DNA of 64,000 nt, taken from NCBI RefSeq assembly GCF_040938485.1, contig NW_027271040.1:3286001-3350000 (forward strand), read 5' to 3'. The notes under the pieces are model-generated. The model was not told the DNA's origin. It saw only the letters and a list, made by a program, of their open reading frames with translations, and did not search any database. The position numbers and the translations under genes are program-made. The DNA comes from Diadema antillarum. Taxonomy: Eukaryota. Of this stretch, positions 1-62,964 are shown piece after piece. The stretch's first letter is position 1, and the number at the start of each line of letters is the position of its first letter.

Positions 1-2993
1 TTTGCCTAAACATACATGGGGATGTAGTGAAAATTCTAGAACTAATTAGTGAAGTTGGAGTAAACTTGAACTACCCATTTAAAAGTTATACATTTTCAAA
101 GTTTTGTGTAAATCCATGTGCTGTCACTGTTGTATGGAAAGGCCGCTATGGTTCATAATGTACCCGTGTTACAACAACATGGAGTAAATATAAAGAGAAT
201 TCCTCTCATTTGCATTTTTCTAGTATAATGAAAGGACACTCCACATGTACCTCCTTCAGAATGCTTGAAGATTAATAATACCCTCAAAATGTATCAAAAT
301 CAAGTCCAGGAAATATGTACTTTTCCACAAGGAAATACTATGAAATGCCCTTTATATTCTATTTACACTGCTGTACTATCATGATATCATGTATTGTTGT
401 ATAGCCTTCCTATCCAATAATGATGAATTCAACCAAAATTTGCAAAGTTATAACTTCTGAACAGATTATCAAAATTCCCTCATATATACTTCACTGATTA
501 CTTCTTCTTCTTTATTCTTCTCCCTCCTTCTCCTTCTCCTCTTCCTCACCATGTCTTAGAAATGGTTTTTATTATACACATTTCTGTTTACTTTTTCTCT
601 TCTGTTTGTTGCTTTCCTTCAAACTTTAAAATTTCTTTCTTTGATTCTCTTTCCTACTGCTTGATTTAAACAAATCCTCTTAAAATCTCAAATTCTATAA
701 TGTCTTCTAAATATCTACCTACTGTAGAAATGCAAGAAACATCACATTTACTATATGTATCTTGTTACATTGAGTCACAATATAAAGTAAACAAAGGCAG
801 TTCAGCGCAGGTATATCCATCCACAGTGACCACATGAACTGTAGATCAAACAGTGAGTATTAGAGTAAACAATAAGTCACTGTCTTGTAATCTTAGGCAA
901 GAAAAATTCAGCATAAATTTGCTTCTTCTTTTTTTTTTTCTAGATCATGACAAATTCTTAATCACCATACCATTGACCTTTTCACCCTTGGTGAGGGCTG
1001 ACCTGTGACATCACAATAGTTTATTCTTGACCTCAGATTTGGAGATCATTGATACACACTATCATTGCCTCTTGTCATATTGTTTGTCTCTGTGTGTGTG
1101 TCCATGCATCACAACTCTTGGTCTACACATGAGTCACTGATACAGTAGGCTGCATGAATCTGTGGTTACCTGGTGATTTCTGTCTCCAGTGGGTGTGGTC
1201 GGATTGGGCACCAGATGAAAGGGTTTTCCCCTATTCTGTCATGCATGTGAGTCATATGGTTACTGGGAAGTGCAGCTATATAGGAGTACAAACTGCTTTC
1301 TTGTTTCCTGGTTTGCACATGAACAGCTGAATAGATGCCTTGTAACATCCATTGCACCTGTTACACTAACTTTTCCTGAAAATGTGTTAATCTTTTTTTT
1401 TTCTAAACCAAACAGAGAAATGAAGATGGTATGAGTGGTTACAGCGTATGAGAGAATTCGTGCAGCACTTCAACAGGTTATCATTACAAACATGCCTGAA
1501 GGATGACCATGTTTACTTTCATCACAGATATATAGAGATTTATATATCTTTTCATGGAGCAATTCATGATATCAATTTTTATGTTGCAGAAGTCATTCAT
1601 TTAGAATCAACTTTGGTTCTACAAATATAGGCCTACATAAAAACAACAGAAAATAGCTATTTCCTCTAGACAATGCATGATATTGTCCATACAAAACCAT
1701 TTTACCAACTTAAATAGCATCAAAAGAGAGATACACTATCAAAGTGACTCTTACAAAAGTATGACTAGTGCTCAAACAATACCACACAGACTGTACTATA
1801 CACCGCACAAAGCTTGGATAATATGCCATTATTACCATTCTGCCGCATACATCCAAGGGGCTGAATAGTGTGGTGAAATGCATGAATGGCGTGATGCCTC
1901 ACTATAATAGCAAGAGCTGGGCGGGGAAGACTCCACGCATGGGAAATTGGTTTTATTAGAGGTTTTCTCAAGTGAGTAGTCCCCACCGCAATGTTTGCGG
2001 GAAAACCTACATGATTCACAAAAGACGTCTCTTTCCCCTTACTTCCGAAATAAAGAATACTTGTCGGCTAAACAGACTTAATAGCTTGTGCTGACCAAAT
2101 CAATGATGCCGCGCAGGCATGTATGACATCATGCCCTCATAAAAGTACATGATGTCATTTTTAATTTTAGCTTCTGTTGGTGGTAACATGGAAGAGAACA
2201 CTTTAATTGATTGAGGCAGTAAATTCAACCACTTAGCCAAAGTCTCTACCAAAAGCAGGGCGAGGTTGTATACTCACTGCTCTCAAAGCGGAGTTCTATG
2301 CATGATGGTATCTGTTTCTAAACAAAGTTGTTCAATCAAGGTTTCTACCACCCACTTAGATCACTTTGAAGAATGTTTCACGTGCACATTAAGGAACAAA
2401 ATTACCAAATGACGTGAGATAGATCACAGGAAATGTGTTGAATTTTCAATGACGGGAGAGAAAGAGGAAATTGTGGGAGAGAGCAAAATTACAACAATCT
2501 TGTATTTTCCTCGGTAGTTGGTTATGGTTCACACCAACCTTAATTCTGTAGCTTTCATATCATTCAATCTCAGACTTTTGAATTCTGGACTCTGCATCTC
2601 TGCATCCCATATAAAATTGCCTTTTCACCGTGACACAGTAGACTTTTTATGTGGATTCATGTGACTTAACCTCAGGATCACACCAAGTACCATTAAACTC
2701 TGTTCCGTCTTCCTGAAAATTGACTATCAATGACTTTGCACAATGCATTACTTGAGCATGGTTATTTTTACAAACAGGATATCTTTTTCTTTTTGTCCCC
2801 TTTCTAAAATAGTCTTTACAATTCACAAAATGCATAGTGAAAATGAAAATGGAACAATATACTGACTGCTTAGAAACCATGCCATCTATCAGCACACAAG
2901 CTTATACACCTTTATTCACTAAATTTGCACTCTCATTTGAATCAAATACAGTGATCTCACTTCCTGAACATGCCTTTTGATTTGCCTTTCTAA

Positions 2994-2994
<1 letters not shown>

Positions 2995-3024
<30 letters not shown>
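2995..3024. repeat. (CT)n microsatellite
   Basis: Direct reading of a near-perfect TC run; it explains the ERERER stretch in ORF 2902..3120. Confidence 0.95.
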
Positions 3025-3235
3025 GTGCATTTTTTTGTGACATGTAACTAGCACAAAAATAAAAGTGCATGTGAATATTTTTGCTTGTAATAAAACGTAA
3101 CAATATTTTATTTGTTTCATCTCACAGAATTAAAAACACACAAAATTCATTTTACCTAAAAGTGCATGTGAACATTTATTTAAAAAACAACAATTTCCAC
3201 TTTTACAGTAGAGTTTCATCCCTCTGTCCAGGGGT

Positions 3236-3237
3236 GT

Positions 3238-3306
<69 letters not shown>
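3236..3306. repeat. (GTT)n microsatellite, followed by a short (GTTT)n
   Basis: More than 20 consecutive GTT units; it explains the poly-Val in ORF 3081..3365. Confidence 0.97.
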
Positions 3307-8200: not shown

Positions 8201-11200
8201 GTGCCCTTTTTGCAGCATAAAGATTTTGTGAATTGTTACTGGCATTCTATATAATGCGTAGGCAAAAGGTTTCACTTGTATTTTACTTCCGCAAATCTTG
8301 CTCCTCGTGCAATTGGCCAAAGTTTCAGGCATGCAAAAATTTCTGGTTTTACAGTATCCTGCCACAGAACACGTCATTTACATTATGTGACTTGTAAACT
8401 GTCCCAAAAATACAGCGGTGGCAGCTAGGAATTTCGAAATGTTTCCACCTGGCCATGACAGAGACGGCATCCTCTTCATCAACAACCTATGGTGATGATC
8501 TACTTATTTCATTTTCTCCCCTTGCTGCAAATGTACAGCAATGCAGTACATCATCCCCATTAGGAGAGGTGACAATTTACACCGGTCCGGGTGGAGGGGT
8601 GTCAAGTTATCGCCAGGGTCGGGTCGTGTGCCGTCCCACCAGGGAGTTGGTCCTGGGCACAACTTCTTCACCTGACGGACCCAATTACGGGTCTCTCTTC
8701 AGATTTGGTGTCATCAGATTGGAGCGGAACATCCATCATTTGGCTGCCATAATTATAGGCATTAAAGACTCCAACATCCACTCTGTTTTTTTCTTTTTCA
8801 TTTTTCCTTTACCTTCAATTCCTACAAAATGATCTATAGAAGTTATTGAAGTTCAGTAATTGGCACGCTAATGACAATGTCAGATGGGATTGACAGTGTA
8901 TTCTGAGATTGGTGTTGAGAGTTGGTCATAGGAAGGCAAATGCCATTAGCAACCAAATTGGGTAACATACACAAAAAAATGAAGATACACACAGACTGAA
9001 GTTCTATGACTCAAAGTCATTATTTTACAGATCATTTTATCAAAATGGGTGCAGTAAATATGCTGTACTCCTGAATTTCTTTATGTCTTTATAATCCAAC
9101 TGGATGGAATTTTGATATTAGCAAGGACTGACAGAGATAGAAAGTATTTAAATCTTAGAGGTTAAGTTTCTATCACTGACAATAAGCAGATAAAAACATA
9201 CATACATAAATATATATAATAAACGGCAAATTGCAAGTTTGTTTATTTGCTTCTTGTATAAACTATTACTTTATGTTTAAACCACAAATTTGAAGAGAGA
9301 GAAAGAGACTTTCAACAATTTCGGGGGGGGGGGGGGGGGGTGCAAAAACAAAACCAAAGTAAAACCAATGTTTTGATGGTAACAATATGAAGTTGAATGG
9401 TAACAAAGTGGGACATAATGATTATTCTCAGCTGTCTCCACTGTTTAGCATTGGTTGAAGTCTGTGGAGCCCCACTAGAAACTTGCAGCGTTACAGCCAT
9501 TGCAATTATTCAGTTTGGATAATATCCGACCCTCCATACACAAACTGACAGCTAGTCATGGTGGACATTAGTGTGCAGTCATGCGTAAAACAGCATTTTG
9601 AGCTATTCTCTTATCGCCTCGCAGTGTGCAAGCTGACCATCGAGCGATAGAGCTGTACGTGGCACATCGAAGGATCGGATTGGCATGCAGTCTCTCTGCC
9701 ATCACACGCGCATGTTTGTATCAATTATGCAGCCAACCCCATTAGGTGCCATGTGCGCCCCACATTCACCACCAACAATCATTACATGCAATTGGACAAG
9801 AGATATATACATTCCCCATCAAAACGCTTTTGTCAACTGAAGAAAGAGAGAAGAATAGCTACAGGGGGAGAGAGGGAGTGAGAGAGAGGGAGAGAGGAGG
9901 AGGAGGAGGAGGAGGGGACATCAATGCACCCACCTCCGATCCCATACCCCCCTCGATTCTCTTTCAGTCAAAAGGCCACCGGCTGCGACGCACCATGCCG
10001 CACAATTTAATATGATATGCATTAAACATGCAGTCACTGGTCCATAGCTTTGCCATATGTCAGAGCTACGTGCCTGCAACTCTCAGCTACGGATGCAAAC
10101 ACATCCCTGAGACGAAAAAAAAAATGCTACGGATGAGCACAAGTCTCAAAACAAGTAAAAAAAAAGGACAAAATTTTCATTGTCAAATCAATCATCATCA
10201 CCTAACTATATGGTAGTTATATTGATATTATAATTAGATTATCATGGAATAATGTGATATAGAATAATGTAAAACGAAACCAAAGTGCAAATAAAAATTC
10301 AAGTTTTTCACTTATGTGAACGAGTAAGTACCTACAGTCATACTATTTCTTATCTTGACAACTGTCTGAAAATGTGATTGTGAAAGATTCTTGCTGTGAT
10401 ATTTTACTAGTAAAGTGATTAAAAATCCCCTGCTTCAGAGAAATGCAAAACATATTTCAGAAGAAATATATTTCATAAGTACTTAATCTTTCCACTTATA
10501 ATAAGATCATAATGTTTTCTACCTGTTTGTCTATTCACGGAAAAGGAAGACAGCACCGCCCTGGTCTGTTCACCCTTCATTCTGTCTTTTGTACGAATAC
10601 ACACACAGCCTCTTGAAATGTCATAGAAGAGTACATTGTAAATACACCTTGGGTAAAATAAAGTAACTGGTGTATTTTTTTCTCTAGCTCATACAAGTTT
10701 CCATGGTGCTTCATCAATTACACCAATCTATAGGAGCTAAATTTCATCCAAAAGTTCTTGAATAATACAAGTAATGCATCTCTTATTCAGTTACATGTAT
10801 GATCCATACTGACAGTACTCCTAGATAGCTGAAATTATATTTGACTAACTATGGACTGTGTGAAATAAATCTCTTTGTTAATTTCTGGGACTTACATCAG
10901 TCCTTCATGCCATGGGTCACAAAATGCACTCTGCTTCTACCATCCTACCTGTCCATGTCCCTGGATGCAGCATCACCGTCACAGCTGTGTATCCTAGCAA
11001 CAACCCGCATCCCACCACTCCTCCATCAGGGCATCCTAGCAGGAGCAGTGACCTGGGGGATACCTCATCACACGAACATGCTCAAGATCTACCAAAGACC
11101 TGGAGAAGAATAAAAAGATGAAATACAGAAAATAACTTTTAAAAGCACAAAATCAAAAACTTTTCTTAGATGACTCAAGATGAAAAGGACATACTTTGAT

Positions 11201-13340
11201 ACAAATTCATCACACTGTTCTACTTTTTTTTTTAAACGATAATTGACCACATTTAATTGCCTGTTACAAATATTAGCCATCTTTTCAATGAGCATGTCTC
11301 TCTCGGCATTCCAACAGTTTTCCTTGCTAGCATTTTACTTCCTTCTTAAAAATCAGACTTCATTTCAAATCACTCCCTATGGATGTAATCACATTTAACC
11401 CACTTGACTAGATTCTACTATCAGACTGTTGCAGTAGGTGACATATCTATGGACTGACAAGTTTACTGTCAGATACTGCCAACAGTGAATGTCCATGGAT
11501 GAAGGCAAGTACAGCAACACTAGGTCACATCTCATTCAGCTTTCCACTCCTCAGCAGAAAAAATGTCCAGTTTTCAACAGGAAACTAATTCACTTGCTCT
11601 AAATAAATGACTGTCCTGTGCTTCAGCAGTCATAATTACATGTTAGGTGATCATCAACGCACAAACTTAGTCACAGTCTGCACTATACACATAACATTGA
11701 TTTTGCTACAAGTTGATTGAATTTTACAAGGAGAGACATGTGGAAATTGAATTGTCATATTCTCAAATTGATTCTGAGATCATGTAGTTTGTATCTTGAT
11801 TGATATAATTAGAAATCAAAGTAATCATATGAACTCCTGGGTACTATTAACTATTAATCTTGCTGTGATCATATATTTCCCCTGAAATCGACATTTGAAT
11901 GGGATTTATGAGAAATTTAATCAGTATAATTTGCTTATAATGACTTGATACTTTAAACTTTTTTTTTGTTCTCTCTTGTCAATGTCTGGCAGGACAAATA
12001 GGCACCACACATGCATTTCTTCTTTCCCCCCTCACGTTCCTCTCTTTGTAAATACCCCCCCCCCCCCAACTCATCATTTAAACTATTTGCAAGCATATAG
12101 ATTGTGTGCACGGGGGTTGCAACGATTTTCAAGCTTTAAGCTTATGTTGCAATTCCTTTGCGTGTTCGTTACCTTGAATAATGTAGCTCTCTTAGAGTTG
12201 TATACTATTTCTGTAACTGCTTCTTATCAATGTATACTTATCGTATATATTCTGTCTAGGCTATATGAGATGTACTTGCATACATTTTGTATGCACTCCT
12301 ATTTTGTGAACGCGCATGAAATCTTGAATAAATTAAAAAAAAAATAATAATAATGAGGAACATCACATGATAATTGCAATGATAAGAAAAAAGATAATAC
12401 CATGGATTATTTCAAATTATTAAGATGGCACACAAAACAAATAATAAAAATTAAATAGATGACCCAGGTTGTCAAAGCTGATTGTTTAGCCATACATTAT
12501 GTAACATTGTTCAAATGTAAACCATACCAAACTTCAAAGGATACTTCACAATGTGTAATGAATCCATCAACTCAATTACAGAGCTATCAACATAATCAGC
12601 ATCCAGGAAGCCAGTGGGAAATTAGCAGAGAATCAAGACATTTCTCTTTCCTCAACACAGGAAAAGCAGGCCATGTTTTCAATGATGCAACCATTTTTTT
12701 GCCATTAAAACCAATTATGATAATGGCAGTCTCAATGACCCCAATCTTATCACCAGTGATGTGCATGCCACATCTGTTTCAAAATTCTCCTCACTCTCTC
12801 ACACGAGGGCTCAACATTCTGGATGGTGCAGTTTGAAGTCAAAATAAAGAGCAAGTATGTTTATGTACAGCACTGCTTTAACTACGCTCATTCGTATTTA
12901 TCATTTGTCATGACAAGAAAAAAACAGATATGTCGCTAAAAAACAGAAATGCATGTACCTTACTTAGCATTTACAATGAAAAAAAAAAAGAAAGTGATAA
13001 TTTTTTATGATCTCACCAGAAGAGACATAAAATCACGAGGGACCATTTTTTTACATACATTCATTCCGCATTAAAAAGAAAACCAACAACACAAAATAGC
13101 CCACTGAAACTTGGTAAAGCTTAGACATTGATTCCACATTAGAAAGAAAACCAACCACACAAAATTACACACCAAAACTTAATAAAGCTTAGGAACCTGT
13201 GGAAATACCATAGAGCTCACTGTAAATGTGCACAATTCTGTTCTTCCTTGACACAACTTCCCAGTTCAGATGTCAAAACCTAGACGAATTTAACAACAAA
13301 GGCTTTAGTAAATTTTTTATGGGAGTTTAGAATGAAAATG

Positions 13341-13526
13341 TCTTACCCATTGACCTAGTGATTATACTTCTGTACTCTCTTAAGTGACAGCACACAGAAA
13401 CAAAAAGCAAAACTACACAAATAGAAAGAAGTCATCTTACCCATTGTCCTAGTGATTATACTTCTGTACTCTCTTAAGTGACAACACATAGAAACAAAAA
13501 GCAAAACTACACAAATAGACAGAAGT
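13341..13526. repeat. Two-copy 94-bp tandem duplication
   Basis: TCTTACCCATTG(A/T)CCTAGTGATTATACTTCTG... at 13341 and 13435, with few mismatches. Confidence 0.9.
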
Positions 13527-14481
13527 TATCCGACACAGGCAAAACAAAAAGAATTAAATAGATAAATTACAGCTAGACAAAAATCCTGACTTTAAAGTGG
13601 CACTGTCACATGTGTGACTTCAATGGAAACAAAATCAAAGCCTACTACATAGCGAGAGACAGAAATGAATACATAAAACAAATAATGACCATTTCAGAGA
13701 GAGGCGAACAAAAGACATGGAAGCGCAAATTAAGAGCTAGCATAGACTTTACAAATGATGGTTGTAGAAAGCTCTGAATCGGGTTGCTTGTACTCCTAAA
13801 CCTACAAAACCTCTTAATCACCATCATCTGGTAACCTTCCCAAACAAAGTTGGCAAACATGATGCAACGTTGTTGCCGCTGCTGCGGCTTCAGCTTGTGC
13901 CAAAGAAAATGGAGCATATGTTTGCGAAAAAGGTCATGAAAAAAGCCTTGCAAATGCTGCCAGTGTTTTTTAAAAGAGTGAAATTTTTCTCTTAAAGTAA
14001 AATGACAGTCTGTATCAAAATTGACTTGAATAAACAGAGGCTAAACAAATAAACAAAACCACATATTTTTCTAGGAATCAGACAAAACAAGAAACTAATA
14101 GAAATTTGAGGTTGAGCATGTTTTTGTGAGACAGGGGTGTGTGACACAAGTCAAAGAAATTAGACAAGGCTATTTACTTATGATATTTTCATCTTTCTTT
14201 GGAAGTCAAAGAAAATTAATACAAAATAATTTTTGTCCATGATCTACAAACTATAACTTCCATCCACATCCAAACATGGAAAAGAAAGTCAAATTCAATT
14301 GAAATAAATCAATATTATTTTTACCTCATTTTCAAATCCGTAGTCATCAGGTAGGCCAAAATTACTCCCTGTTTCAACTTCATGAAGATGAAAGAAAAGT
14401 CATTGTTCAAATGTTCAAATATCAAAGCATTATGTTGCCCTTTCTAAAAAGGTTGTAATAGGGTAATGGTGACACCTTTAA

Positions 14482-14870
14482 AGGGATGGTAAAGTTCTGG
14501 TTGAGATGGGGATTCAGGTTTTAACTTTTTGTGAGATAATTAAAAACCACTTATATGAAACATTACAGAGTATATTAATCTAAGAGCAATTCAGAGTTTA
14601 TTTGATGAAAATCCAATTTGAAATGGCTGAGATATCCAAAAGCAAATGAAAGGTGAGTCCCACCTTTTATTGGGACATCGTTTCAATTTCAGTTTGTTTG
14701 TTTGTTTGTTTTTTGGATATCTCAGCCATTTCAAAACGGATTTTCATTAAATACAATTTGAATTGCTCTTAGAATAATATACTCTTTAATGTTTCATATA
14801 AGTGGTTTCTATAGCTATCTCACAAAAAGTTAAACTAAATCCCAATCTCAACCAGAACTATACCATCCCT
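14482..14870. mobile_element. Non-autonomous foldback DNA element with TTAA TSD (Kolobok-like termini)
   Basis: TTAA|AGGGATGGTAAAGTTCTGGTTGAGA ... TCTCAACCAGAACTATACCATCCCT|TTAA, with arms complementary for over 150 bp. A TTAA TSD with purine (AG) termini fits Kolobok rather than piggyBac; the superfamily is an inference. Confidence 0.85.
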
Positions 14871-15761
14871 TTAACGTGTCTGGAGTGACAGAGAAGGGAT
14901 CAGGTTTTCTCTGATCTTAGTTCGGTTTCTCACTTCCAGACAGGACAAAATCAAAAGTAATCTCTTCCTGGAGTGGCTCAGTAAGATCTCTTCCTGTTAG
15001 TATCACATCCTCTGCAAGCTCAGAAACTCTTGGCTGCACTATCAGCTTTTGTCTTGATGTGGATTAGCCATTTTTTGCACATCATTGTGCCTCCCCGGGG
15101 TCAAAGTTCACAGTCATTTTACAGATTTGACCTGCTTCCTACTCCAGTAATCGACTGTTTGCTCAAAAACAAAACCAAAAAGGGAAATATAATTTGTTTC
15201 ATTTTCATTATTTACCATTTTTATCATTTGCTTTAATAGTCCTGATTTTGAGAAGTTGATTGCTTCAGTGAGAGTTCCTAATCATTCAAAGGGAATATAC
15301 ACATCTCAATATTTGTGTGTATTTCACAGAGATTGCTTTGAATCTTGTGCATATTTGTCCAGGTATTTTCAGGTAGACAGTTGATCATTCTATCAAAAAA
15401 GTGTTAAACACAGTGATGTATTTACATCAGGATCCTTGAACTCAAGATGGCACTGGTAATCAGGACAGTCTGTCTGAAATTTCATCTCAAACTGTCCTCA
15501 CGGAAAGTTGCATAGGGTATAAAAGTATTTTTGACCTTTCTTTTTATGTTTTCTATGCTCAGCATTCTTCATAATGTTGCAATCACCATGTAAGCATGAT
15601 GTAATGACCACACAACATACACACCAGTCAGTTTTGTGATGCAGCGTGCCCCTTTATACGTGAGAACACCTCCACCATCTCCTGGCATGTCACACACGCA
15701 TGCACATCTTACACATGGAGCCACAGTTTGAAATGCAGCAAGTTCAAATGTAAGTAAAATA

Positions 15762-15947
15762 CAGTGGACTCCCGTTATAACGAAGTCCTTGGGACCGGCA
15801 GTTTTCTTTCATTATATTAAAATTTCATTATAACTGAACAAATAAACAATTAAAATACATAGAGTGGATAATCATGCGGCCTAAATTTTTACTTCATTGT
15901 AACCAGAATTTCATTAAAACTGTGTTCGTTATAACTTGAGTGCACTG
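15762..15947 (+). mobile_element. Tigger/pogo-type MITE (family with copies at 21393-21566 and 34287-34475)
   Basis: TA|CAGTGGACTCCCGTTATAACG ... GTTATAACTTGAGTGCACTG. The internal sequence is shared with the other two copies. Confidence 0.85.
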
Positions 15948-18514: not shown

Positions 18515-21392
18515 CCGTAGTTTGTATACTTGCACCATTGACAAATTGTATTGTGTCATAAAAGGACAAGATGTAGCTATTTGATATAGGTGCATAATAC
18601 CAAATCCCACAAGATCACATTAACGCACAGAAAAAACAAAAACAAAAAAAAACACATGCCCACACACACACGTTACAGAATATCAACAACATGAGAAATC
18701 AGCTGGGATATAAGTAATTATTTTGCAACTGAATGAGCTGCAAGATTTTTAATGTACTTTTGTTTTTCATGTAGCAACATTTCCTGGGGCCATCTTCCCA
18801 GCCGAACTTTGCTTATGAAGATGATTCATGCTTCCAATTATCATCTTAGAACTGTACTGTAAGTATTTCCTCTCACAGTGTTCAATCAACATGAAATTGC
18901 TTCATATCTTAATTTTGTTTTCTAGTAAACATAATGAACATGATGTGTATTGATTTTGCATCTTATGATTATATCAACACTTTGATGAACTGTGTTACAT
19001 TGCATTGGCAATAGAATGCAGGAATAAACTTAACAGAATGTGGTTACATAAAGAAGTAAACATTCATTTATCTGTTTTCCTTTAATTCTATTATCACATT
19101 CAGCTATATTCACTGCACCTTTAAAATTCCTTTGCTGCCTGCGGAGTTCAAACAAACTTTGTTGTAACTCGCCAATCGCACTAATATGTCCTCGCTCATG
19201 TGAAACAATCACACTAAATTGAACACAAAAGAAGCTAATTGCCCATAAAAAGCAAAACAGACATGGCAGCAGCGGCAACCGTGACACTGTCCCGTTGTTA
19301 ACTGCAAAAAAAGTATCAGTACAGCGATTTAATAGCAAACTATTACAGTCCATCAGAACTAAATTAAAAGCCTTGATGTCCGTGGTCCGATGGTGCTGCA
19401 TTTGAAGTGATGTGGTGTCATCTCTAATTACAGCGGTCTGGGCTGCACTATCACTGACATGTTTGAAGCTGAAGTTGGTCCGATGATCATTACATGATTG
19501 AGATAATAAAGGTCACAGTTAATGAGTCTCAAATAAAGTGACTTTTACATTACACCTTGTCCTTTAATTAGACTGTCTTTCAAAAAGGAATCTGATGACA
19601 TGAAGGGGAAGGCTTTTCAAATTTTAAGGTTATTCCATCTCTGGAACAACGGATAACTTGGCAACAACAACAAAAAAGTTGTTTTATGTGTTGGCAAGGA
19701 ACATAATCTCCACCATTAATAATACACCACATCAATTTGTAAAACGAGAAGTCCTTCATCAGAATGTGTCACATATAGGGCATACATCTAAACACTAATC
19801 AAAGACACTGCCATATACAGCCACTGAAAAAAAAAATCCCTCCTGGAGAAAAGCCATGTTAGAGACCCTGTCCGTAGCAGCCACCTGTTAATAGCGGCCA
19901 TGATGTCATCTCCCTTGGGTGGGTGCTGTAGACAGGTTTGACAGTATCTATACCCTGAAAAGCGCCATTCTTGCAACAAATCATGTCTTCCGTGCAGTCA
20001 GTACCGCTCGGACCGACCGATGAAGGTGTACTGTTGATGCCAGCAACACCATCCGGCTCTATTCTACTAATCCGCTCCGTCACACTCGCAGGAGGCTAAT
20101 AAATTACAGACAAACTCATTCCACTAGGGCAGAGAAAATTTCACCCCTTCCTCGATCTTTTCACCACCTTCCCTGATTACCACAGTCCTGGGTCTACAAC
20201 CATAGATGCTGGACTATGGCTCCTCAATGAGCAAGGGAGACAACACCAACACCCCACTTCAATACCTCCATGTATAAAATCTGATTTGAGCGAGAGACAA
20301 ATTTTACCCTTGGCACACTTTTATGACCTTCCCAAGCTGCTTAAAAGTACTTTTTACAATGAATATGTCTGTAATGGACACATAAATTAGGTAACTTGGA
20401 ATGAAATTATTATTTGGTTGTTACACGATAAATTAGTCATAGATTGTAGCTCTGACTCCATGTATCCAGTGGGATTTGATGTCAAAGAGAAATGGGTTGT
20501 ATCAGCTTTTAAAAGATGACCATGGTACTCCCTTTTCTACCACACTCAAAGTTTCAGGCAGTTAGGCTATATAGTGACAAAGTCTGACTACTCCATGTTA
20601 ACAAAACACACATTTAGAAGCATGTTTTCAGAAATGTGATAACAAGAGTTTTTAGGTAAAGAGTAAAATTCCAACAATTCTGCTTCAAAACTATCAGTCC
20701 AAAAATCTTTTGTAAAGTTAGACAAGTATATATACAACTATCAACATAACAATGTGTGCACAGCCCTGCTCCATCCAATTATTGTTATTTATATCTTTGC
20801 CAGCGTGCAAACAAAAACCATGATCTATGCAGCAGTTTCCACCTTTCTCTTTCTCTAGCAATATCTCAATTTTTGAATAACTAATCCTGGCCAAAGCCGA
20901 GACCGCAGGACCAGACAGCAGAACAATGGTCACGGTAACCTCAAAATTTTATCACTGAGAGGGGGGAAGGAAGGGACAAAGAAATTTGAGTGGTAACCAG
21001 CTCCTGGATGGGCAGGTGTGTTGACAAACCTTCAATGATCCCTGACCAAAATGTTTTCTTATTAGTGGAAAAAGGTCATTTCTGGATACCCACCATGCAT
21101 ATCAAAGCCACAAGGAGAAAGTTTGGATGGCTTATCGGTAGATTATCTGGTTAGAAATGCATGCTGGTTATTTCAAATTTGGGCATTTCTAGTAGCACTT
21201 TTTTTTTTCTCCTAGTGAAACACCACAAAGGGCAGTAATTTCCATAGAAATTTACCCGGTAAAGACAAGTTCCGAGTACACTCGGGCAGGTGTCTAAGGG
21301 AAATGCATGTTGTAGCAATATCAGCCCATCCTCAATACTTCTGGTGGAATTCTCTTCTTATCTTAGCATCCTCCTACATTGGACTCGATCCC

Positions 21393-21566
21393 TTTATTAT
21401 GAAGTCCTCAGGACCGGCAGTTTTCTTTCCTTATATCAAAATTTCATTATAACCAAACAAATAAACAATAAAAATACATAGAGCGGATAATGTTGCAGCC
21501 TGAATTTTTACTTCATTGTAACCGGAATTTCGTTATAACCGTGTCCATTATAACAGGAGTGCACTG
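21393..21566 (+). mobile_element. Tigger-type MITE copy, 5' end eroded
   Basis: Colinear with 15762-15947 (GGACCGGCAGTTTTCTTTC...GAGTGCACTG|TA). Confidence 0.85.
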
Positions 21567-21980
21567 TACTGAACATTTATATTTGAATTTATATACACTA
21601 GGATAAACTAAAATAGACCCTTTTGATCTACTATTCCTCTGTGAGACACAACTACTACTTTGAAGTATCTCTATCAAATTTCTAGTTGAGGATATGTATT
21701 TTAGCATGTTCAGCTAGATTATGGAAAGACAGCTAGAACAGTGAAACATATTATCAGGTATTTGATATAAAAAACTGCCTTGATAACAGCACATGAAGAC
21801 TGGTACAAATTACATCACGGCAATAAAAGTAATTGGGCAGTTTACAACACCTTACGACTTGCTTCAATCTAAAACGATTTTTTTTTTCTTGGCAAAACCA
21901 GAGCACAGAAACACCAGCAGGTATTCCAGCCAATGTTTGAATAGCTGCATCATGTGAAACGTCATTTTCAAAACACACTT

Positions 21981-32589: not shown

Positions 32590-33120
32590 TTAAGTATAGT
32601 TTGAGACTTCAATTAAATTTTGATCTGGGTCCCTAAAGTATACAGATTTGATAGGGCCAACAGCTCCAGTCCGCATCACAGGGCCTTCCTCTATGCTGAC
32701 CCCACACTCCCCTAGCCGGGCCATCACATCTACGATAGGTGTGTTGGATATAAAGCAGAGATCAGCTGACCCTGGGGTGGGGCATGCCGCCTTGGGCTCA
32801 AACTCCTTGCCCGCCTGGTGGAGGTTGATCTTTTGGTTGCCAAAGCGGAGAGCCTTGCGCGTCTCTTTGAATGTGATCTCCTCCATGCCGAGAACACTGG
32901 TGTAGAAGCGAACGGTGGCAGCCATGTCTCTGACCGTTAAAACCAAGTGGTCAAGGTGGTCAATACGGATAGCTCCAGTGGAGGACATGTCTCTGGTATA
33001 TTTCTGAAGCAATGCCCTTAGACACTGCGGTGTAGTTGGAGCAACTGTAGACTTGTGGATATCCAACAATGGGTACCTTTTCAGCAAGTAACACACATTA
33101 GAGTTTATGCTTCTCAGCAT
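32590..33120 (-). CDS. GLOD5: Glyoxalase domain-containing protein 5-like (VOC superfamily), 176 aa, single coding exon
   Basis: Translation contains IDHLDHLVLTVRD..ATVRFYTSVLGME, ALRFGNQKINLHQAGKEFEPKA..PTPGSADLCF and GPV.RTGAVGPIKSVYFRDPDQNLIEVSNY, which are characteristic of GLOD5 and related VOC proteins. The acceptor TTTTCCAG lies just before the ATG at 33120, and AATAAA is at 32508-32513 (minus strand). Confidence 0.92.
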   Translation of the reverse strand: MLRSINSNVCYLLKRYPLLDIHKSTVAPTTPQCLRALLQKYTRDMSSTGAIRIDHLDHLVLTVRDMAATVRFYTSVLGMEEITFKETRKALRFGNQKINLHQAGKEFEPKAACPTPGSADLCFISNTPIVDVMARLGECGVSIEEGPVMRTGAVGPIKSVYFRDPDQNLIEVSNYT

Positions 33121-34286
33121 TCTGGAAAATAGCAAACCCAGGGAACACTTTCAATGGACCAACTTTGTACTATTATTTATGCACAGTGAACCAAGGCACA
33201 AGGATATTAGATAGGTTCCAAGAAACAGCTCATCCAGTCCACTTCTGGCTGCAGAGTTGGCCAGCCTCCTAACAACATTGAGACAAACAGGACAGAAACT
33301 CACTTTTCAGATCAACAAGATTCCATATGCTGTTCCACACAGTTCACAGCAGTTCCATTGCTTAGTCTTAGAGATGTTGCTACAACCATAGCCCTCATAT
33401 CATCATGGAGAGCTTCCAGGTTATTTTAGAAGATGTCTGTCAAGCAGTCTGAAATTTAGAAAATTTAGATGAGATACCATATACATTATACAAAGATGCA
33501 GAATGTTTTGCTGTCTAATCTATTAATGTTGAAGTAGTATACCTCACAACACAATAGTAAATAAAATCATTTGGTACGACAACAAAGCACCACCTACTTA
33601 TTTTCACAAGAACAAAAACTGCAAGTGTAGGCAAGGTCTGACTGTTTTTGGTTTACTAGAATAATTTACATCCATATATCACATTAGCCTCTGATATATG
33701 GATTCTTAATTTTTGAGAAAGAAATGGGTTAAGATGAGAACATAACACAAAGGCATGAAACTGTCAAAAAGTGAAAATTATTAATATTATTATACAAAAC
33801 AACATAAGCTTTCTAAAAGATGTTGCAAACTGTCAGGTCTTTATGCAACATGAATAAATTTTGTTGAAGTTGAACTCTCAAATACAATTGTGCTCTGTTG
33901 ATATGATTGAGAGTGATAAACGTAAATCTAACTGATAGAATTCTACAACACATATACTCCAATAAATCCTTAAATCAATCACAGAAGGATTCATTTTGTG
34001 TTGGTTTTCAGGTTCAGATGAAGAATCAACAATCTATTTTCACACAGATCAATCATACATGGACCTGTTCAAATGCATCAAGGGCCAAGGTAGAAGGTTT
34101 TGCACTGAATGTCACAACAGGCATTGTCTAATCACATCCATAGCCCAATCAATCAGGTAACAAATGAGATGTCACAATTCATTGTTATCCATACATTCAA
34201 TAGAAATTTGTGTTCACACTACTTACTTCAGCAACATGTGCAACTTAAATGCCAATGGATCATGACCAACTATTACTACATCAATA

Positions 34287-34475
34287 CAGTGCACTCTTAA
34301 AAAGAACACGGTTATAACAAAATTCTGGTTGCAACAAAGTAAAAATTCAGGCTGCAACAGTTTCCGCTTTATTTATAATAATTTCCACTGTTTACTTGTT
34401 TGCTTATAATGAAATTTCGATATAACAAAAGAAAACGGCTGGTCTTAAGGACTTCGTTATAACGGGAGTCAACTG
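34287..34475 (-). mobile_element. Tigger-type MITE copy (reverse orientation of the 15762 family)
   Basis: TA|CAGTGCACTC ... CTTCGTTATAACGGGAGTCAACTG|TA. Confidence 0.85.
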
Positions 34476-35292
34476 TAATGCAATGCAAGCACTGCCCCTC
34501 TGTGCTCCAAAGTTGGCAAAGAGAACTTGATGCAGCAATTTAATATATTTCAAAAGACATTATGATAAAGCTTCTGCATCTTTCTTTCTTTGTCTCAGAA
34601 CAGTAGAAAAGGTAATTACTGATTCTCACACTGAATAGCTAGGGCCTCTCATGCCTCAGGACATAATTCCATCTCATCACATAATTTGGACCTTTAAATG
34701 GGTTCCACATCTCAAGGATTCTCACCTTAGGGGCTACAGGTCTTGTTAATATATCCATGAATGGCCTTGGCATATCACAGCATTCATAAATTCTTCTTCT
34801 TCTTTTTTACGACTGCCCATCACATTTTCGTATTGTTCTTCTTTATTGCTTGATTTTCCCCAGTATGGAGAACTGCAAAGGTTGTGCAGGGTTATCTGCC
34901 AACACTTTTTTTCTCTCCTTCCAGTCTGAGAGGGTGATACAACAAGACCAGAGACAAGAGTTATTAATATAATAGTACAGCAGAATCCAACTTATTGAAG
35001 AGTGAATGAGCCTGGTAGGTAAAGAAAGCATTCACTGTACACTGATTCAGCTGTTGTGGTTAATGTGGGAGGATGTTGTTCGTCACATAGTTTTGGCCAC
35101 TTAGCCGACTAAACATTCATAATGATCCACCCAACAAGTGGATATGGATCATACAATGACAATGTTTCAGCAGTACCAGTGCCAGTGGCAGTAGTGTAAG
35201 GGAACATTGTAATGTGTAAACGGTTGTAACAGATTCGCCGAGAGAGGGCGGAAAAGATGTCGAAAGATGGCGACGGTCAACGGAGGACTTAC

Positions 35293-56730: not shown

Positions 56731-57486
56731 CTGGCAGTCCCAGTGACATCAATACAATAGGGTTTCCCTTCATACATGTATAATCAATTCTATATATTGA
56801 AGTCAAATCTATGAATGGACAATATGCTTCAAATGAAGAAATATTTGACTTTAATACATGATTGATGTAACTGGCACATATTCCTGACAGTTTGGTCTGA
56901 GTATTTGACTGCTACTGTGTCAGAAATAAATCCTGTGCAACTTTTACTTGTGCACAGTTGACTAACCTACAAATATTTGAATGAAACTTGGCATGTACAA
57001 TGTATGAGTGGGCAAAGTTGTGTGTATCAACTTTTGGGCACACATGCTCAAGGTCAAGAGGTCAAGGTCAAATGCACAAAATTTCACTATGTCCCCCATA
57101 TCTATGCAATGCCAGAAGGTACTTTCTTGAAACTCTGCTATGTCAGGAAATGTTTCCGCACACACACGCCCTTTCAAATTCATGCTCTCACACCCGCCTT
57201 TGTTCTTGTGTTTGCACAGGCGTGACGTCCCTTTTGTTGAAAATGCAAGCAATTGCTTGTGCAGGACAAGCAAAAGGTTATGCATATGGAGGCAATTGCT
57301 CGAGCTAGACCTTTTGCTAGACTAGCTTGTGCTTTTGCTTGAAGCAATTGCTTACAAGCAATTGCTAGTTTTATGTATTCGGCCCAAGGATAGCGAACAT
57401 TCAACACTGTTTGTGACAAACCTGTCATTTTAATATTTTGCTAATTATGTGAAAGTCCTATCACACATTGTCAAGACATTGTACTA

Positions 57487-58790
57487 CAGGAGAATCCTGT
57501 TCTAACGAGATCATTCCAGCCAATTTTTCTCGTTATATCCGGATTCTCGTCGTATCCGAACAATTGATAGACATCCTTAAGTCTGCGCACGGCAGCTCTG
57601 GAGGATGTGGAAGAAGCACTTCTGACTTGGTTCCGTGATGTTCGCGCCAAAAACCTGCCTGTGAGCGGACCACTGCTAAAGGAGAAAGCGGAAAACTTTG
57701 CCCGGCAAATGGGCCATGATGGCTTCAATACTTCAACTGGCTGGTTAAATCATTTCAATGAGAGAAACGGTATTCGTCAACTACGGGTATGTGGAGAGAG
57801 TGCTGGAGTTGATGCTGAGACTGTTGATACGTGGCAAACCAAGACATTGCCTGCAATCATGAAAGATTACACACCGGAGAACATTTTTAACGCTGACGAG
57901 ACTGGTCTTTTCCATCGAATGACTCCGGATAGGACTCTGGCTTTTTGACGGGGAGGAGTGCTACGGCGTGAAGCAGGCCAAAGATCGACTCACAGTGATG
58001 TTGTGTTCGAACATGATGGGGACGGAGTAAAATCAGGCCACTTGTCATCAGTAAAGCGAAAACACTAAGATCACTGAAAAATGTGCGTGCTCTTTCGGTA
58101 GATTACATCGCCAACAAGAAGGTGTTGATGATATCAGATAAATTTGAGGCAGCTGGACAGGAAGTTCTTGGCCCAAAAAAGACGAGTTCTCCTGTTTGTC
58201 AACAACTGCTCCGCTCACCCCAACATCACCGGCCTGCAGTCCATCATTCTTCAATTCCTCCCTCCAAACACGACGTCACACCTGCAGCCGATGGACCAGG
58301 GGGTCATTCAGAGCTTTAAGACCCATCATATACAACTAATGAAAGCCTGCTAGGTAAGTATCAAGTGGGCGAAACCCCATCACTTGTAACCGTCAAAGAA
58401 GCCATCAAAGCAATCCACTCTTCATGGGAGCAGATCAGTGCAGCATGCATTGCTCATTGTTTTGAGAAAGCCGGATTTCAGCCTCAAGAGGAAGCATTCA
58501 AGCCGAACCTATTGATGTCCCTGATGGCCCATCATCTCCGCCCAAAAACATCTGGGAAAGAATGGGACACCATAACATTCCTGCAACATCCAACGACCAG
58601 GCCAGCGACAGTGACGACAGCATCTGGAGTCACATCAGCTGCCATCTCAATCTCCATGACATCTCTTTCTGCCAGTACACCACAGCAGTCTTCCATGCAG
58701 ACATGCACCAACCAAAGTTTTTGGTTTTTTATATGTTGGGCTTCCATATTATGTTTGATGTATCAATCATATGTATTTTAGATGGGTGCC
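57487..58790 (+). mobile_element. Decayed pogo/Tigger (CENP-B HTH + DDD) transposon, internally deleted
   Basis: The TA|CAGGAGAATCCTGTTCTAACGAG terminus joins almost directly to LEDVEEALLTWF...P.SGPLLKEKA..FA...F..STGWL.HF..R (CENP-B HTH). Then come ENIFNADETGLF, KDRLTVMLCSN, VLLFVNNCSAH (second Asp changed to Asn), FLPPNTTSHLQPMDQGVI and W..IS...IAHCFEKAGF, split by stops and frameshifts. The right boundary is approximate. Confidence 0.93.
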
Positions 58791-59068
58791 ATCATATGCG
58801 AGATATAAGAGATCCATAGGCCTACAGCTATAGGTGTGAGGTTCTGTTGATAGATTATAAATCTAGGGAGACAAAAGTTGGACAAAAGGGTCAGGTCAAT
58901 GTCCAGTAGACTTCCCATTAGTTTTCCAAACAACTTCACAAATATAAATTATCAAATGCTGCATGCCACAGCTGCATGCATTCTGTGATTTTTACCAATT
59001 GATATGATGATTGATTGGAGAAAAATAATTATTTCCTTCAATTTTTTCCTGCTCTCATTTAATTTCAG

Positions 59069-61775
59069 ACCCAAGATGGTGAGGCTGAAAAGCATGTCTC
59101 TTCTGAAGCAAATCGTGTAGAGTATGCGGCAAAGCCAACCTCAAGCAGAGTCTCAACTTAGCATCATATCAAGGTCTTCTGCAAGAGACTGTCAGTATAA
59201 TATGCATTGACCATGATGTAGATGGCATACATGGGAAGAAAGCCTGTAACAAGTGCCGCCACAATTTGTTGAAAAGGAACGAAGACCCAAGCCATCACAT
59301 TGAACTATTTACATTCAAACCACATGACACAGACTGTCAATTGTGTTCTACGAAGAAAAGGTAGACCAAAGAAGAGTACTGCTGCAAGGATAGTTCTGGA
59401 GTAGAATGACATAAGACTGATATCCCTTTATCTACAGCTGCTCATGTCAGAAATCTAACTGCAGAAATTTTCATCAGATCTGTGTAAACCTTCTGTTATT
59501 GATTCACCTACTACAACAAGCACAGCACCACTAGAAATTGAAGAGCAAGCTTTTCCAGCTGAAAAATACGCACCAAAGAGATTTGTTCATAATCACTTGG
59601 CAGATATTTTATCGTGTGTAATTTGTAATTGTATTACAAAAGGCCCACTTACTGGACAATGTGAACACATCTATTGTAGAGATTGTTACAACCAGTGGTT
59701 TTCAAATAGTAGTGTCTGTGCTAAATGTAAGTTTATTGTAGTAGAAGGTGAATTTTCAGGAAAGTCAGGGTTGGTTTAATGATATTTTCTCTTCTTTGAA
59801 AGTACAGTGTAGCTATCATGTGAATAGTTGTTCTTATACATGTAAACTGGCCGAGTTCAAACAGCATGAAGTAGCTTGAAGTAGAAAGTCAGAACCTCCT
59901 GTCAAAAAAAGCATGTAATAAAAGTGCATCTCGATCAGGTTAGAAGTCCAAAACCCCTCTAATTGACGCAAGGAAAGATTACGTAAAGACTAAGAGGTTA
60001 GCCCCAGTTTTATCTCAGATAGATCGTTTTTGTAATAGAACATTAGAAGACAAGACCTACATCCTGTTTTTGAATTTTAATTAATCATCTGAAGTGCAAG
60101 AAAGATGCTAGGTGGAAGCAAGTAGATAACGTATGCAGAATAGGTTAGGTTCACTTACACTAGTGGAGTGCCTTGCACTTAGTTTCTTCATTGCAAAGTG
60201 AACAGCAATACAGGAAACATGATTCATTCTTAAAACAAAAATCTGGAGAAGAGGTGCTGAAGCCAGTGGGGGTTCTCGATAGCATTGAAAAAACTTTCAT
60301 GCCTGGCTCTGCCAGGTATGAAATAGAGGGTCAAGCACCCACTGACACTTCCTTCCATCATACCCAAATAAAGACAGTAACAGGCTCAGCTGTTGTTGGA
60401 GAGAGCTTGTATGAACCCATATAGGTTCAAGTTTGATCACAGGCAATACCCAGAGATAAAACGTCCTGAATGTACCAGTTAGGTGGCCATATCCAAGTGC
60501 TTTAGCGAAAACTCTAAAGGAGTTAGATCCTCAAATTCAGGATGGTTTAAGGAAAGAGGGGATTGATCCTCATGATGAAAATGAAGAATTCACAGTCCTA
60601 ATAAAAGATGGTTCAGATGGGATGGCAGATGTGTCAGTGTACAAGGTAAAAAATGACACTTTTCTCCTGGACAAGGCATTTCACCCGAGTTTTGCTATTC
60701 TTCGCATCAAGGCTATCCACCAAGTACAATGTAGGAGGCAATATTATGGTATTTGAAGAAGGAAAGCCTAACTCTGTTCAATGCAAAGGGCCATTGCTGG
60801 AAGGATTCAGTGACGATAATGATATATTGACGGCTAATCTGTTGCAGATTCCTATCGAGGAAAAGAGGGAGTTTCTTAAGGGAAAGGTTATGAAAGTGTG
60901 GTGCACGGATCTGTGGAGACGTTTCCACTCTTGATTTTTCAATTCCATGACTGATGAGTAGCTCGACAGAGCTGAAGGCGGACTTGCTGGCAGTGGTTCC
61001 AGGTACCTGTGCATTTTGTGCACTGCTACTCAGGAAAGTGGTAAGTCCAGACTGGGTTCTTTTTAAGTTAATCAAACCTATATCGCATGACTTCAGCGAT
61101 TGCTGATTACATTCAAGTAAATCCAGATAAGCTGTCAGAAGCTGAATTGGACAGTCTCTCACTTGGTGTGAAACAGCGTCCCTTATTGAAGTCCGATGCT
61201 GAGGCAATACTTCTAGATGCTACTCAATCCAACATTAATCTTGGCATTTTCTTCAAAAAAAATCATCGTGAGAAAAATTGCAGGAGTGCGAAGTGGGAGC
61301 TGACATAAGACATCAAAGGACTAGTGGAGCATGCTGAACATAAATTTGATGCTCACATAAGAAAGCATGTTGGATCAGTTCCCCAGCTTGTGATGCCTGG
61401 GAACTACTCCAGACAGTTGTGTTCTGAGAAGAATGCACAAGTCATCCTCTCACGTATTCCCAATGAGGAAAGGCAGAAGCGTTTGGATGCTGTTATGGAG
61501 AAGTTCTGTTTGTTACGTTCAGTGTATAGTGCAAATACGCCACGTGTTACACATGTCAATGAACTCCACCAGTTTGAGGATGTCGCTGTGGAAATGGGTA
61601 GAGAATTGATCTCTCACTTTGATTATGTCACATGGCCCAATTACTTCCATAAGGTCACAGAGCACCCTCAGGAAATAATTGAGAATGAGGATGGACCTGG
61701 TTCAGTTGGAGCCATTAGCGGAGAAGGCAATTAAGCCAAGAACAAGCTCTTTTACAACACCTAAAAAGAATGTAG
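59069..61775 (+). pseudogene. RAG1L: RAG1-like (RAGL/ProtoRAG-type) recombinase/transposase pseudogene
   Basis: Colinear RAG1 motifs across frameshifts: CRVCG...DGIHGKKACNKC (59116-59256), FKPHD.DCQLC..GRPKK, C3HC4 RING CVIC...CEHIYCRDC...CAKC (59615-59728), SLKVQC...C...H..., ECLAL...QQY, GSDGMADVS (D600-equivalent 60616-60618), VFEEGKPNS, MTDE (D708-equivalent 60953-60955), EGGLAGSGSRYLCILC, MPGNYSR, WPNYFHKVTEH, SVGAISGEGN*AKNKLF. More than ten stops and frameshifts. Confidence 0.95.
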
Positions 61776-62009
61776 CTATCCAATTGGTCAATTGCCCATC
61801 ACATGACAATTAGTTAAAAGTTCCATCGCATGCTGTGGGTGTCAGCCATGCAATTTTGTTGGAGCAAAATTGGATAGCGCATGGTTGACGTCACCCATTT
61901 CTACCGAGTCACGATGTTAAACTCAAGATTCACAGAAAACGGTTGCCATTTCTGTGCTAAATTCAAGAATCTCTGTGGACCACATCTGTTGACTTTGGAG
62001 ACGTTGTAT

Positions 62010-62964
62010 AGAACAAATAGTGTATGGGCTTTACTCATATTAGCATATTAGCCTGGCCTTTGACCTTTGACCTTAAAATTCCCAAGAGAATTGCTGTCAG
62101 GAAGAACACGCATAAATATGTACCAAGTTTCATGATACATTGAGTAACTTTCAAGATATGGAGGATAAAAGTGAATATAGCACTTTCACTTGACCTTTGA
62201 CGTATCAGCAGGAAGTTTCCAAGAGAATCTCCATTGGGCAATATATGTATATATTAGGTTTCAAGAAAAATCCTGCAAGCACTGCAAAAATATGATGTAA
62301 ACAGTACAATTTTGAGTTGACCTTGACCTTTGACCCCTAAATTCCCTAGATAATCCCTGCCATTCAGTACATGCATATGTACCAAGTTCCATGAAGATAC
62401 CTTGAACCATTTGCAAGATATGGAAAGAAGTGCAATTTTAACATTTTCTCCTGACATTTCACCTCTTGACCTTTGACCTCAGGACTTGAAACGCTCTCTG
62501 GAGAATCTTTATTCAGTATTACATGTCTACACTGAGTTTCAAGAAAATACCTTGAGGCACTGCACAGATATGGGGGAATAGCATAATTCTTAGCATCTGA
62601 CCTTGACCTTTTGACCTTTGACCTATTGCCAATTTCACTTAAACACTACCTACTTAACTGCCCCTTCGTACGTCATCCTGGCATGAGGTTTGGTGAAAAA
62701 TGCTTCCTCCAGTCTTGAGTTATCGCGTAAACAGATAGATTTTAGGGTTTGACCATAATCTTTGACCTTTGTCCTCTGGATGACTTCACCCAAAATCTAA
62801 TCAAGTAATTGCCCCATCATACTTTATACTTGGACCAAGTTTAGTAAAATTCCACTGAATATTACTCAAGTTATTGCGTAAACAAATGGGAACGGGCGTA
62901 TGGACATACGTACGGACAACCCGAAAACATAACGCCTCCAGCACCCTTCGGGCGGAGGCATAAA
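62010..62964 (+). mobile_element. pearl/DINE-1/HINE-like non-autonomous element with tandem core repeats
   Basis: Repeated TGACCTTTGACC cores (about 62060, 62190, 62320, 62467, 62598, 62762) with TACCAAGTTT/CCATGA motifs; an ACGG-type simple repeat; 3' stem-loop GCCTCC-AGCACCCTTCGGGC-GGAGGC followed by ATAAA. A reverse-oriented fragment lies at about 56960-57100. The left boundary is approximate. Confidence 0.75.

Follow-up and report, generated by a model that had tools for sequence, protein, structure and literature searches.

The 64,000-nucleotide stretch of contig NW_027271040.1 of Diadema antillarum analyzed here (positions 3,286,001 to 3,350,000, referred to as the window) contains, at 59076–61752 on the (+) strand, a colinear, intronless and nearly full-length pseudogene for a RAG1-like (RAG1L) protein, whose stop-free pieces are spread over the three (+) frames. 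This relic is very probably a solitary and now dead RAG1L gene that belongs to RAGL-B, the invertebrate line of RAG-like transposases. The original prediction, which was made from the sequence alone, had described a near-full-length fossil RAG1-like gene with a defined order of domains at 59069–61775. Pfam matches, solved structures and end-to-end alignments all agree with that description, and its borders were right within about 25 bases.

When read in order, the pieces of the three frames reproduce the domain order of RAG1-like proteins. The Pfam family RAG1 (PF12940, 653 positions) was matched colinearly between 60164 and 61731 by profile positions 92–140, 175–251, 255–322, 338–359 and 456–585, and the part of the profile beyond position ~585 is absent from the relic. 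Two RING families were matched upstream of the core at 59612–59731 (zf-C3HC4 with E 4.6e-5, above the cut-off, and zf-RING_2 with E 5.9e-6), preceded by a match below the cut-off to RAG1_imp_bd (profile positions 149–210 at 59191–59361, E 3.4e-4). Searching the solved structures with the two longest pieces of the relic yielded the amphioxus ProtoRAG transposase BbRAG1L (6b40_A) as the top match (1.9e-29 and 1.2e-18), while the chains of vertebrate RAG1 reached about 1e-12 and 3e-8. These far better E-values for BbRAG1L, together with a WPNY...HKV.EH signature that agrees with the RAG1L consensus and with the RAGL-B residues described below, bear out the earlier view that the gene resembles invertebrate RAG1L rather than vertebrate RAG1. 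No chain besides RAG1 and RAG1L was retrieved with either piece at E ≤ 1, and therefore no match to Transib was obtained. The original prediction had named a grouping with Transib or Chapaev transposases as the outcome that would speak against it. Nothing beyond the common superfamily favors such an origin, all strong relatives of the relic are RAG1L proteins, and the N-terminal motifs, the RING finger and the ZnF-A segment are colinear with the core, which makes a Transib or Chapaev relic extremely improbable.

Proteins were aligned to the DNA by our own frameshift-aware dynamic programming using BLOSUM62. As proposed in the original prediction, this kind of alignment matched the relic end to end with RAG1L proteins, at 40–43% identity. 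Residues 4–881 of the RAG1L of the brittle star Amphiura (P0005, 973 aa) align to 59081–61752 (40% identity over 849 columns), and residues 216–969 of a mollusc-type RAG1L (P0130, 1032 aa) to 59486–61752 (42% identity over 741 columns), with residues 20–109 of the latter matching 59107–59349 separately in tblastn searches (E 8e-7 to 8e-6, depending on the query). The relic is contiguous throughout, and no intron-sized gap was observed. A full HMMER scan of a 141-aa piece against 1.84 billion representative proteins returned 103 relatives, the best of them with 48–52% identity. Those named "V(D)J recombination-activating protein 1-like" come from Diadema setosum, Amphiura filiformis, Asterias, Ptychodera flava, Branchiostoma lanceolatum and Lytechinus pictus, and true RAG1 proteins from turtles are also among the 103. 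No protein derived from the relic itself is present among the 1.84 billion representatives, the best match being 52% identical. The features by which descent from RAG1 or RAG1L can be recognized, namely a colinear core, four zinc ligands and N-terminal cysteine motifs followed by RING and ZnF-A, were all found.

From its 5' end, the relic probably begins with an ATG at 59076 (ccaagATGG), which opens a frame of about ten codons (MVRLKSMSLL, 59076–59105) and is followed by a one-base shift placed at ~59106 by the alignment guided by P0005; the similarity behind this reading of the start codon is weak. The N-terminal zinc motifs CRVCG...CNKCR...H..CQLC occupy 59107–59361 (RAG1_imp_bd; tblastn with P0130 aa 20–109), and a frameshift after them leads into a basic RRKGRPKK segment reaching to 59401. 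The C3HC4 RING finger at 59612–59731 keeps all eight zinc ligands, as read from the sequence and matched by Pfam. It is followed by a ZnF-A-like segment at 59745–59876, recognized by the P0130 alignment without a Pfam match, in which the second histidine has been replaced and behind which the stop at 59877 follows. The equivalent of the nonamer-binding domain (NBD) at 59944–60081 was located by tblastn with P0130 aa 371–411 (37% identity) and by alignment; it contains no GRPR/K motif, and no GRP occurs anywhere in the aligned stretch. The region from the dimerization and DNA-binding part to the pre-RNase H core lies at 60164–60421 (PF12940 92–140, E 0.012; tblastn with many RAG1L proteins), and the part with the RNase H fold at 60460–60717 (PF12940 175–251, E 9.6e-10; 6b40_A, 1.2e-18) carries the D600 equivalent in KDGSDGMAD. 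The core segment at 60740–61063 includes the E649, E662 and D708 positions and the CxxC ligands as well as in-frame stops at 60932 and 60959 (Pfam and alignment). The core linker follows at 61072–61305, with frameshifts placed by the alignments at ~61255 and ~61290 ahead of the stop at 61306. The C-terminal core at 61309–61752 (PF12940 456–585, E 2.8e-12; 6b40_A, 1.9e-29) loses its homology after KNKLF: all tblastn homologues cease aligning at 61752–61758, yet continue for 60–110 residues further. The C-terminal ~60 residues of the protein are gone, the CCGHC zinc-knuckle tail region falls beyond the end of the relic at 61752, and tblastn with RAG1L C-termini gave no match elsewhere in the 64-kb window. 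All motifs named in the original prediction (N-terminal zinc motif, RING, ZnF-A-like segment, D600, D708, YLCILC and FHKVTEH) are present.

The relic is unable to make a protein any longer. It contains nine in-frame stops, at 59402, 59456, 59877, 59941, 60932, 60959, 61064, 61306 and 61732, and 11–15 frameshifts, a number that varies with the protein used as guide. The catalytic site has lost two of its four carboxylates, the position of E662 being occupied by Asp (60815–60817) and that of E962 by a TAA stop (61732–61734), while the equivalents of D600 (GAT at 60616–60618 in the motif KDGSDGM) and D708 (60953–60955, with a stop two codons on) are kept. An active enzyme needs an intact DEDE tetrad and an open frame, and the relic has neither. 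The zinc ligands C727 and C730 are preserved in YLCILC (61010–61012 and 61019–61021), as are H937 and H942 in FHKVTEH (61648–61650 and 61663–61665). The earlier statement on retained features is therefore valid for D600, D708 and the zinc ligands, but it missed the stop at E962, the Asp at E662 and the lost C-terminus. The proposal that the protein could be computationally resurrected finds no basis, because there is one decayed copy whose nearest relatives are at most 52% identical, which does not allow a consensus to be formed. In all analyses, the relic was read through with an X at every break.

The relic is present in contigs from the DNA runs of two studies, which are identical or near-identical to the window, so it is a real locus and not an assembly artefact. 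Contigs of the sets X1 and X2 carry the same stops from 59877 to 61306, those covering the stops at 59402 and 59456 show no alternative letter, and the stop at 61732 is present in a contig of X3 without any difference to the window. The contig depth over 58800–61750 equals that of the single-copy flank, at about 25 in X1 and 5.7 in X2, which indicates that there are no sister copies of at least 90% identity, copies below ~90% identity being invisible to this comparison. Second haplotypes are 5–7% divergent. Contigs of both X1 and X2 lack one nucleotide at 59904 and seven nucleotides at 60724, and each of these changes closes a frameshift, so two of the lesions are specific to the assembly or to a haplotype; the extra bases stem either from variation between haplotypes or from errors of the assembly. 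In X3, the haplotypes also differ by indels at 61261–61290, within the core linker. By hand count, 10 of 23 haplotype differences fall on third codon positions, so there is no sign of ongoing constraint. The stretch was found in none of the runs recorded as RNA, a weak indication that the relic is silent.

These data also bear on the alternative that the locus is a live gene whose apparent breaks are introns or assembly errors. The two frameshifts missing from the X1 and X2 contigs and a splice-acceptor-like tract ahead of the ATG could be taken in its favor. However, the nine in-frame stops lie within conserved blocks, one of them in the E962 codon, and are unchanged in independent contigs, the C-terminal residues are gone, no protein of the relic exists in the collection and no RNA run contains the stretch, and we regard a live gene as hardly credible.

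For assigning the relic to a family, three residue criteria are available for RAGL-B: position 649 is neither E nor Q, position 848 is hydrophobic, and the NBD lacks a GRPR/K motif (Martin et al. 2023, PMC10629977). The relic shows all three, with Val at the E649 position, Val at the R848 position (61390–61392) and no GRP in the NBD equivalent, where position 848 separates it from vertebrate RAG1 only, because Met848 is shared with RAGL-A. In a phylogenetic tree of 29 rows, it fell among RAGL-B-type rows, outside the clades containing the echinoderm type I genes and RAG1. After removing the worst long branches, a tree of 23 rows placed it inside a clade excluding the RAG1/A-like rows with a support of 99 in the Shimodaira–Hasegawa-like approximate likelihood-ratio test (SH-aLRT), as sister to the Asterias plus echinoid clade (SH-aLRT 85), with the Amphiura protein of 973 aa next (89). 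In the approximately unbiased (AU) test, topologies with the relic grouped with the RAG1/A-like rows (p 0.021) or nested within the set of three type I genes from echinoids (p 0.033) were rejected. The A-like rows were defined by their grouping with turtle RAG1, as the trees hold no named RAGL-A reference. As judged by residues and phylogeny, the relic is assigned to RAGL-B rather than to RAGL-A and vertebrate RAG1, and it does not belong to Transib either. A phylogeny for assigning the family had been proposed in the original prediction. By contrast, its description as a relic of the transposase ancestral to the V(D)J recombinase does not hold, because RAGL-B is a sister family and the RAG1/A-like grouping was rejected. 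Being dead and of the B family, the relic has no direct bearing on the origin of V(D)J recombination.

Within RAGL-B, the sequence evidence assigns the relic to an echinoderm lineage separate from the domesticated RAG1L-RAG2L pair. The echinoid type I proteins (P0001, P0127 and P0128) have no RING family in their precomputed domains, while RING is present in the relic and in the mollusc-type proteins, and the type I gene of Diadema is interrupted by two introns, close to aa 63 and aa 257, where the relic is contiguous. Because it keeps the RING and lacks these introns, the relic does not represent the domesticated RAG1L of echinoids in a decayed state. An origin as a segmental duplicate of the host's own type I (B1) gene would fit with the RAG1L of D. 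setosum being the best-scoring named representative for the C-terminal piece (48%; 47% in tblastn) and with the sister position of the relic to the type I clade in the 23-row tree. Yet, in addition to the RING, the missing introns and the rejected nesting among type I genes, no nucleotide similarity of the Diadema RAG1L loci was found over the relic and no RAG2L adjoins it, leaving a segmental duplicate as a very unlikely explanation. The relic may be a member of the group described as "B2" or "B-like" by Morales Poole et al.

Whether the gene arrived as part of a transposon was judged from its surroundings. In tblastn searches with the RAG2-like (RAG2L) protein encoded beside P0130 and with RAG2L fragments of Diadema, nothing below E 0.6 was obtained anywhere in the window. 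No pair of inverted repeats flanks the relic besides copies of a repeat. We considered the inverted pair 57050–57135 versus 62258–62618 as a possible element end and rejected it, since it resembles the degenerate repeat units filling 62040–62780. Occurrences of CACTATG, which we take to be the ProtoRAG-type heptamer, and of the Diadema-type end CACGTTCARCTT in the window are at or below chance and in the wrong places. The claim that the locus documents a RAGL transposon copy consequently remains unproven, as no RAG2L, no pair of terminal inverted repeats (TIRs) and no sister copies were found. A transposon insertion is a plausible origin, judged from the family membership and the intronless, RING-bearing form. 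On the downstream side, the contig depth in X1 jumps from ~25 to 3,300–15,000 at 61753, where dozens of loose contig ends occur, and amounts to 130–600 times the single-copy value up to 62100. The end of the relic thus coincides with the start of a high-copy mosaic repeat, which abuts and truncates it at 61753–62100, as delimited by contig depth, loose contig ends and direct repeats.

The missing introns and the absence of RAG2L could also be explained by a processed pseudogene, retro-copied from a spliced solitary RAG1L gene. The relic is contiguous across the intron positions of Diadema RAG1L, solitary and single-copy, and the echinoid RAG1L genes are reported to be multi-exon (PMC9885083). 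However, the intact transposon-type RAG1L gene coding for P0130 is intronless too, and the missing introns therefore do not discriminate between a retro-copy and a transposon. Moreover, no parent gene closer than ~50% identity was found, and the 3' end is cut at 61753, so no poly(A) tract or flanking duplication is left to be examined. We consider the retro-copy unlikely.

Several points weigh against the interpretation of the relic as a solitary RAGL-B gene of transposon descent. Its place in the 29-row tree is an unresolved polytomy, the support for its sister position in the 23-row tree is moderate (85), and both AU p-values are only ~0.02–0.03. The trees lack the published type II and B2 sequences: word-index searches retrieved seven proteins with P0001 and five with a profile, and the type II genes of S. 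purpuratus and P. lividus were not among the rows. Downstream of the relic, only 2.2 kb remain to the window end at 64000, consisting entirely of repeats, and a RAG2L relic or the missing C-terminus could be located just beyond. No TIRs, target-site duplication (TSD), RAG2L or sister copies were found to back the transposon origin. The RNA runs lend weak support to silence, and the age estimate given below depends on a Poisson count of nine and on the substitution rates applied.

Dead RAG1L genes have already been documented in sea urchins. Yakovenko et al. 2023 (PMC9885083) reported 3–7 RAG1L sequences per urchin genome, treated the ~60% of them that are unannotated and unexpressed as likely pseudogenes, and described solitary "type II" RAG1L copies; in S. 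purpuratus, they saw no mobility. Morales Poole et al. 2017 (bioRxiv 10.1101/100735) described many fossil RAG1L fragments without TIRs in urchins, together with a B1/B2 duplication and "B-like" copies in echinoderms. Because unannotated dead urchin RAG1L sequences have already been published, the relic is a fairly ordinary fossil. Like the urchin type II copies and pseudogenes, it is solitary, unannotated and apparently unexpressed and has neither RAG2L nor TIRs, but this particular copy is intronless, keeps the RING and is nearly full length. It shares with BbRAG1L of ProtoRAG the Val at the E649 position, the hydrophobic residue at R848, the absence of GRPR/K and the domain order. ProtoRAG is intact, however, and comprises TIRs, TSDs and RAG2L, whereas the relic is dead, truncated before the CCGHC tail and without visible ends or partner. 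The domesticated echinoid pair (SpRAG1L, type I/B1) is RAGL-B of the same phylum and provides the nearest clade in the 23-row tree. Its genes differ from the relic on each of the following counts: they lack the RING, contain introns, stand tail-to-tail with RAG2L, and are intact and expressed (PMC9885083; the missing RING of SpRAG1L also in PMC10629977). With vertebrate RAG1 and RAGL-A, the relic has the fold, the zinc ligands and the N-terminal RING/ZnF-A architecture in common, but it lacks the E649-type residue, the GRPR/K motif of the NBD and Arg848. To what is documented of RAG-like elements in echinoderms, the relic contributes a further dated and well-preserved case, a RAGL-B gene that has a RING and is separate from the domesticated pair of urchins. 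Comparative genomics can use it as a marker after orthologous sites have been examined in other urchins.

Judging from its homologues, the relic would once have been an intact, intronless gene of ~1000 codons for a RAG1L protein with N-terminal zinc motifs, a RING, ZnF-A, a DDE core of the RNase H fold and a zinc-binding C-terminal domain, and the missing ~60 codons would have included the CCGHC DNA clamp. Together with a RAG2L partner, such proteins cut at CAC-type inverted ends and insert with duplications of 5 bp. Most likely, a RAGL-B element with a RING was inserted long ago and left the gene behind, or the gene descends from such an element as a solitary "type II" RAG1L copy. Of all single-base changes possible in the coding sequence of an intact RAG1L, 5.1% create a stop, and the nine stops in ~890 codons correspond to ~0.07 substitutions per site (Poisson range about 0.03–0.13) accumulated after constraint ended. 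Converted with the silent-site rates of urchins, this roughly suggests that the loss of constraint happened tens, not hundreds, of millions of years ago. The nearest relatives are ~55% distant at the protein level, and most of this divergence therefore predates the death of the gene, whose lineage, as read from its sequence, had been a working gene for a long time. We tentatively propose a second, RING-bearing RAGL-B lineage, which would predate the divergence between asteroid and echinoid type I genes and would have been under selection until a few tens of millions of years ago in a Diadema-like line. In that case, at least two RAGL-B lines would have persisted in echinoids until recent times, and one of them, the element of the type I clade in D. 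setosum, is possibly still active; we regard this combined scenario as doubtful. If true, two recent echinoid RAGL-B lines would contradict the published view of all echinoderm RAGL loci as immobile.

The element of D. setosum was met in the course of this analysis and is of larger value than the relic itself. In the assembly GCA_964275005.2, the RAG1L protein P0001 is encoded twice, on OZ188196.1 (locus L002, 6588–21362) and on OZ188186.1 (locus L003, 6593–21221). The two units of ~14.7 kb are located on different chromosomes, are 99.5–99.8% identical and have unrelated flanks. They start with CACGTTCAGCTT and end with AAGTTGAACGTG, which are inverted relative to each other at 12 of 13 bases and are of the CAC type, and they are bordered by 5-bp target-site duplications (CGCCT on both sides of the L002 unit, CAGTT on both sides of the L003 unit). 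The encoded RAG1L of 853 aa is identical in both copies and has the full DEDE tetrad, the zinc ligands, M848 and the CCGHC tail, and a kelch-type RAG2L of 475 aa is arranged tail-to-tail with it. By these sequence features, the unit looks like a recently mobile RAGL-B transposon in a sea urchin. According to Martin et al. 2023 (PMC10629977), echinoderms have no known RAGL element that is intact and competent for transposition, and our literature search found no publication on the RAG1L-RAG2L element of D. setosum. If confirmed, it would be the first echinoderm RAGL element with marks of recent transposition. The L003 unit falls within the range of another gene, and a member of a ~190-bp repeat family is inserted in one of the two copies only (L002, 10291–10481).

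Positions 10001–15096 of locus L001, on a 96-kb contig (European Nucleotide Archive ERZ26168041), comprise an intact, intronless RAG1L gene coding for P0130, which contains a RING and is the best full-length match of the relic, and, tail-to-tail with it, an intronless RAG2L gene for a protein of 452 aa with a Cys/His-rich end. Because P0130 is 70% identical to a protein of Pinctada imbricata and the two genes form an intronless convergent pair, L001 is considered a mollusc-type RAGL element, probably a mollusc RAGL-B transposon. The repeat search for TIRs in L001 gave nothing usable. A Helitron-type gene adjoins the RAGL pair.

The neighborhood of the relic differs from that of the SpRAG1L/2L locus, with which the original prediction had proposed a comparison of synteny: neither DECR1 nor Rhpn1 was found in the window. 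A gene for a glutathione S-transferase (GST) is present ~10 kb from the relic. The solitary RAG1L gene LOC115920226 of S. purpuratus is listed beside the GST gene LOC587859 (PMC9885083, Table S2), and the presence of GST near both represents a possible lead to orthology. A decayed transposase of the pogo/Tigger type lies directly upstream of the relic at 57470–58800 (+) (HTH_Tnp_Tc5, E 1.3e-17; DDE_1, E 1.4e-11). On the other side, the mosaic repeat at 61753–62780 contains the internal inverted bits gctatccaatt and aattggatagc, and degenerate units of ~130/260 bp rich in tgacctttgacc run on to ~62780, with an inverted copy of the unit at 57050–57135. Farther away, a 132-aa open reading frame at 32593–32988 (−) codes for a glyoxalase/dioxygenase domain (Pfam, E 2.3e-10), apparently in a single exon, and no identical product is on record in the protein collection. 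The Lytechinus locus L007 has no repeats in common with the window. The ~190-bp interspersed repeat family mentioned above is represented in the window at 15760–15947, 21375–21568 and 34284–34477, with 78–87% identity to the members from D. setosum.

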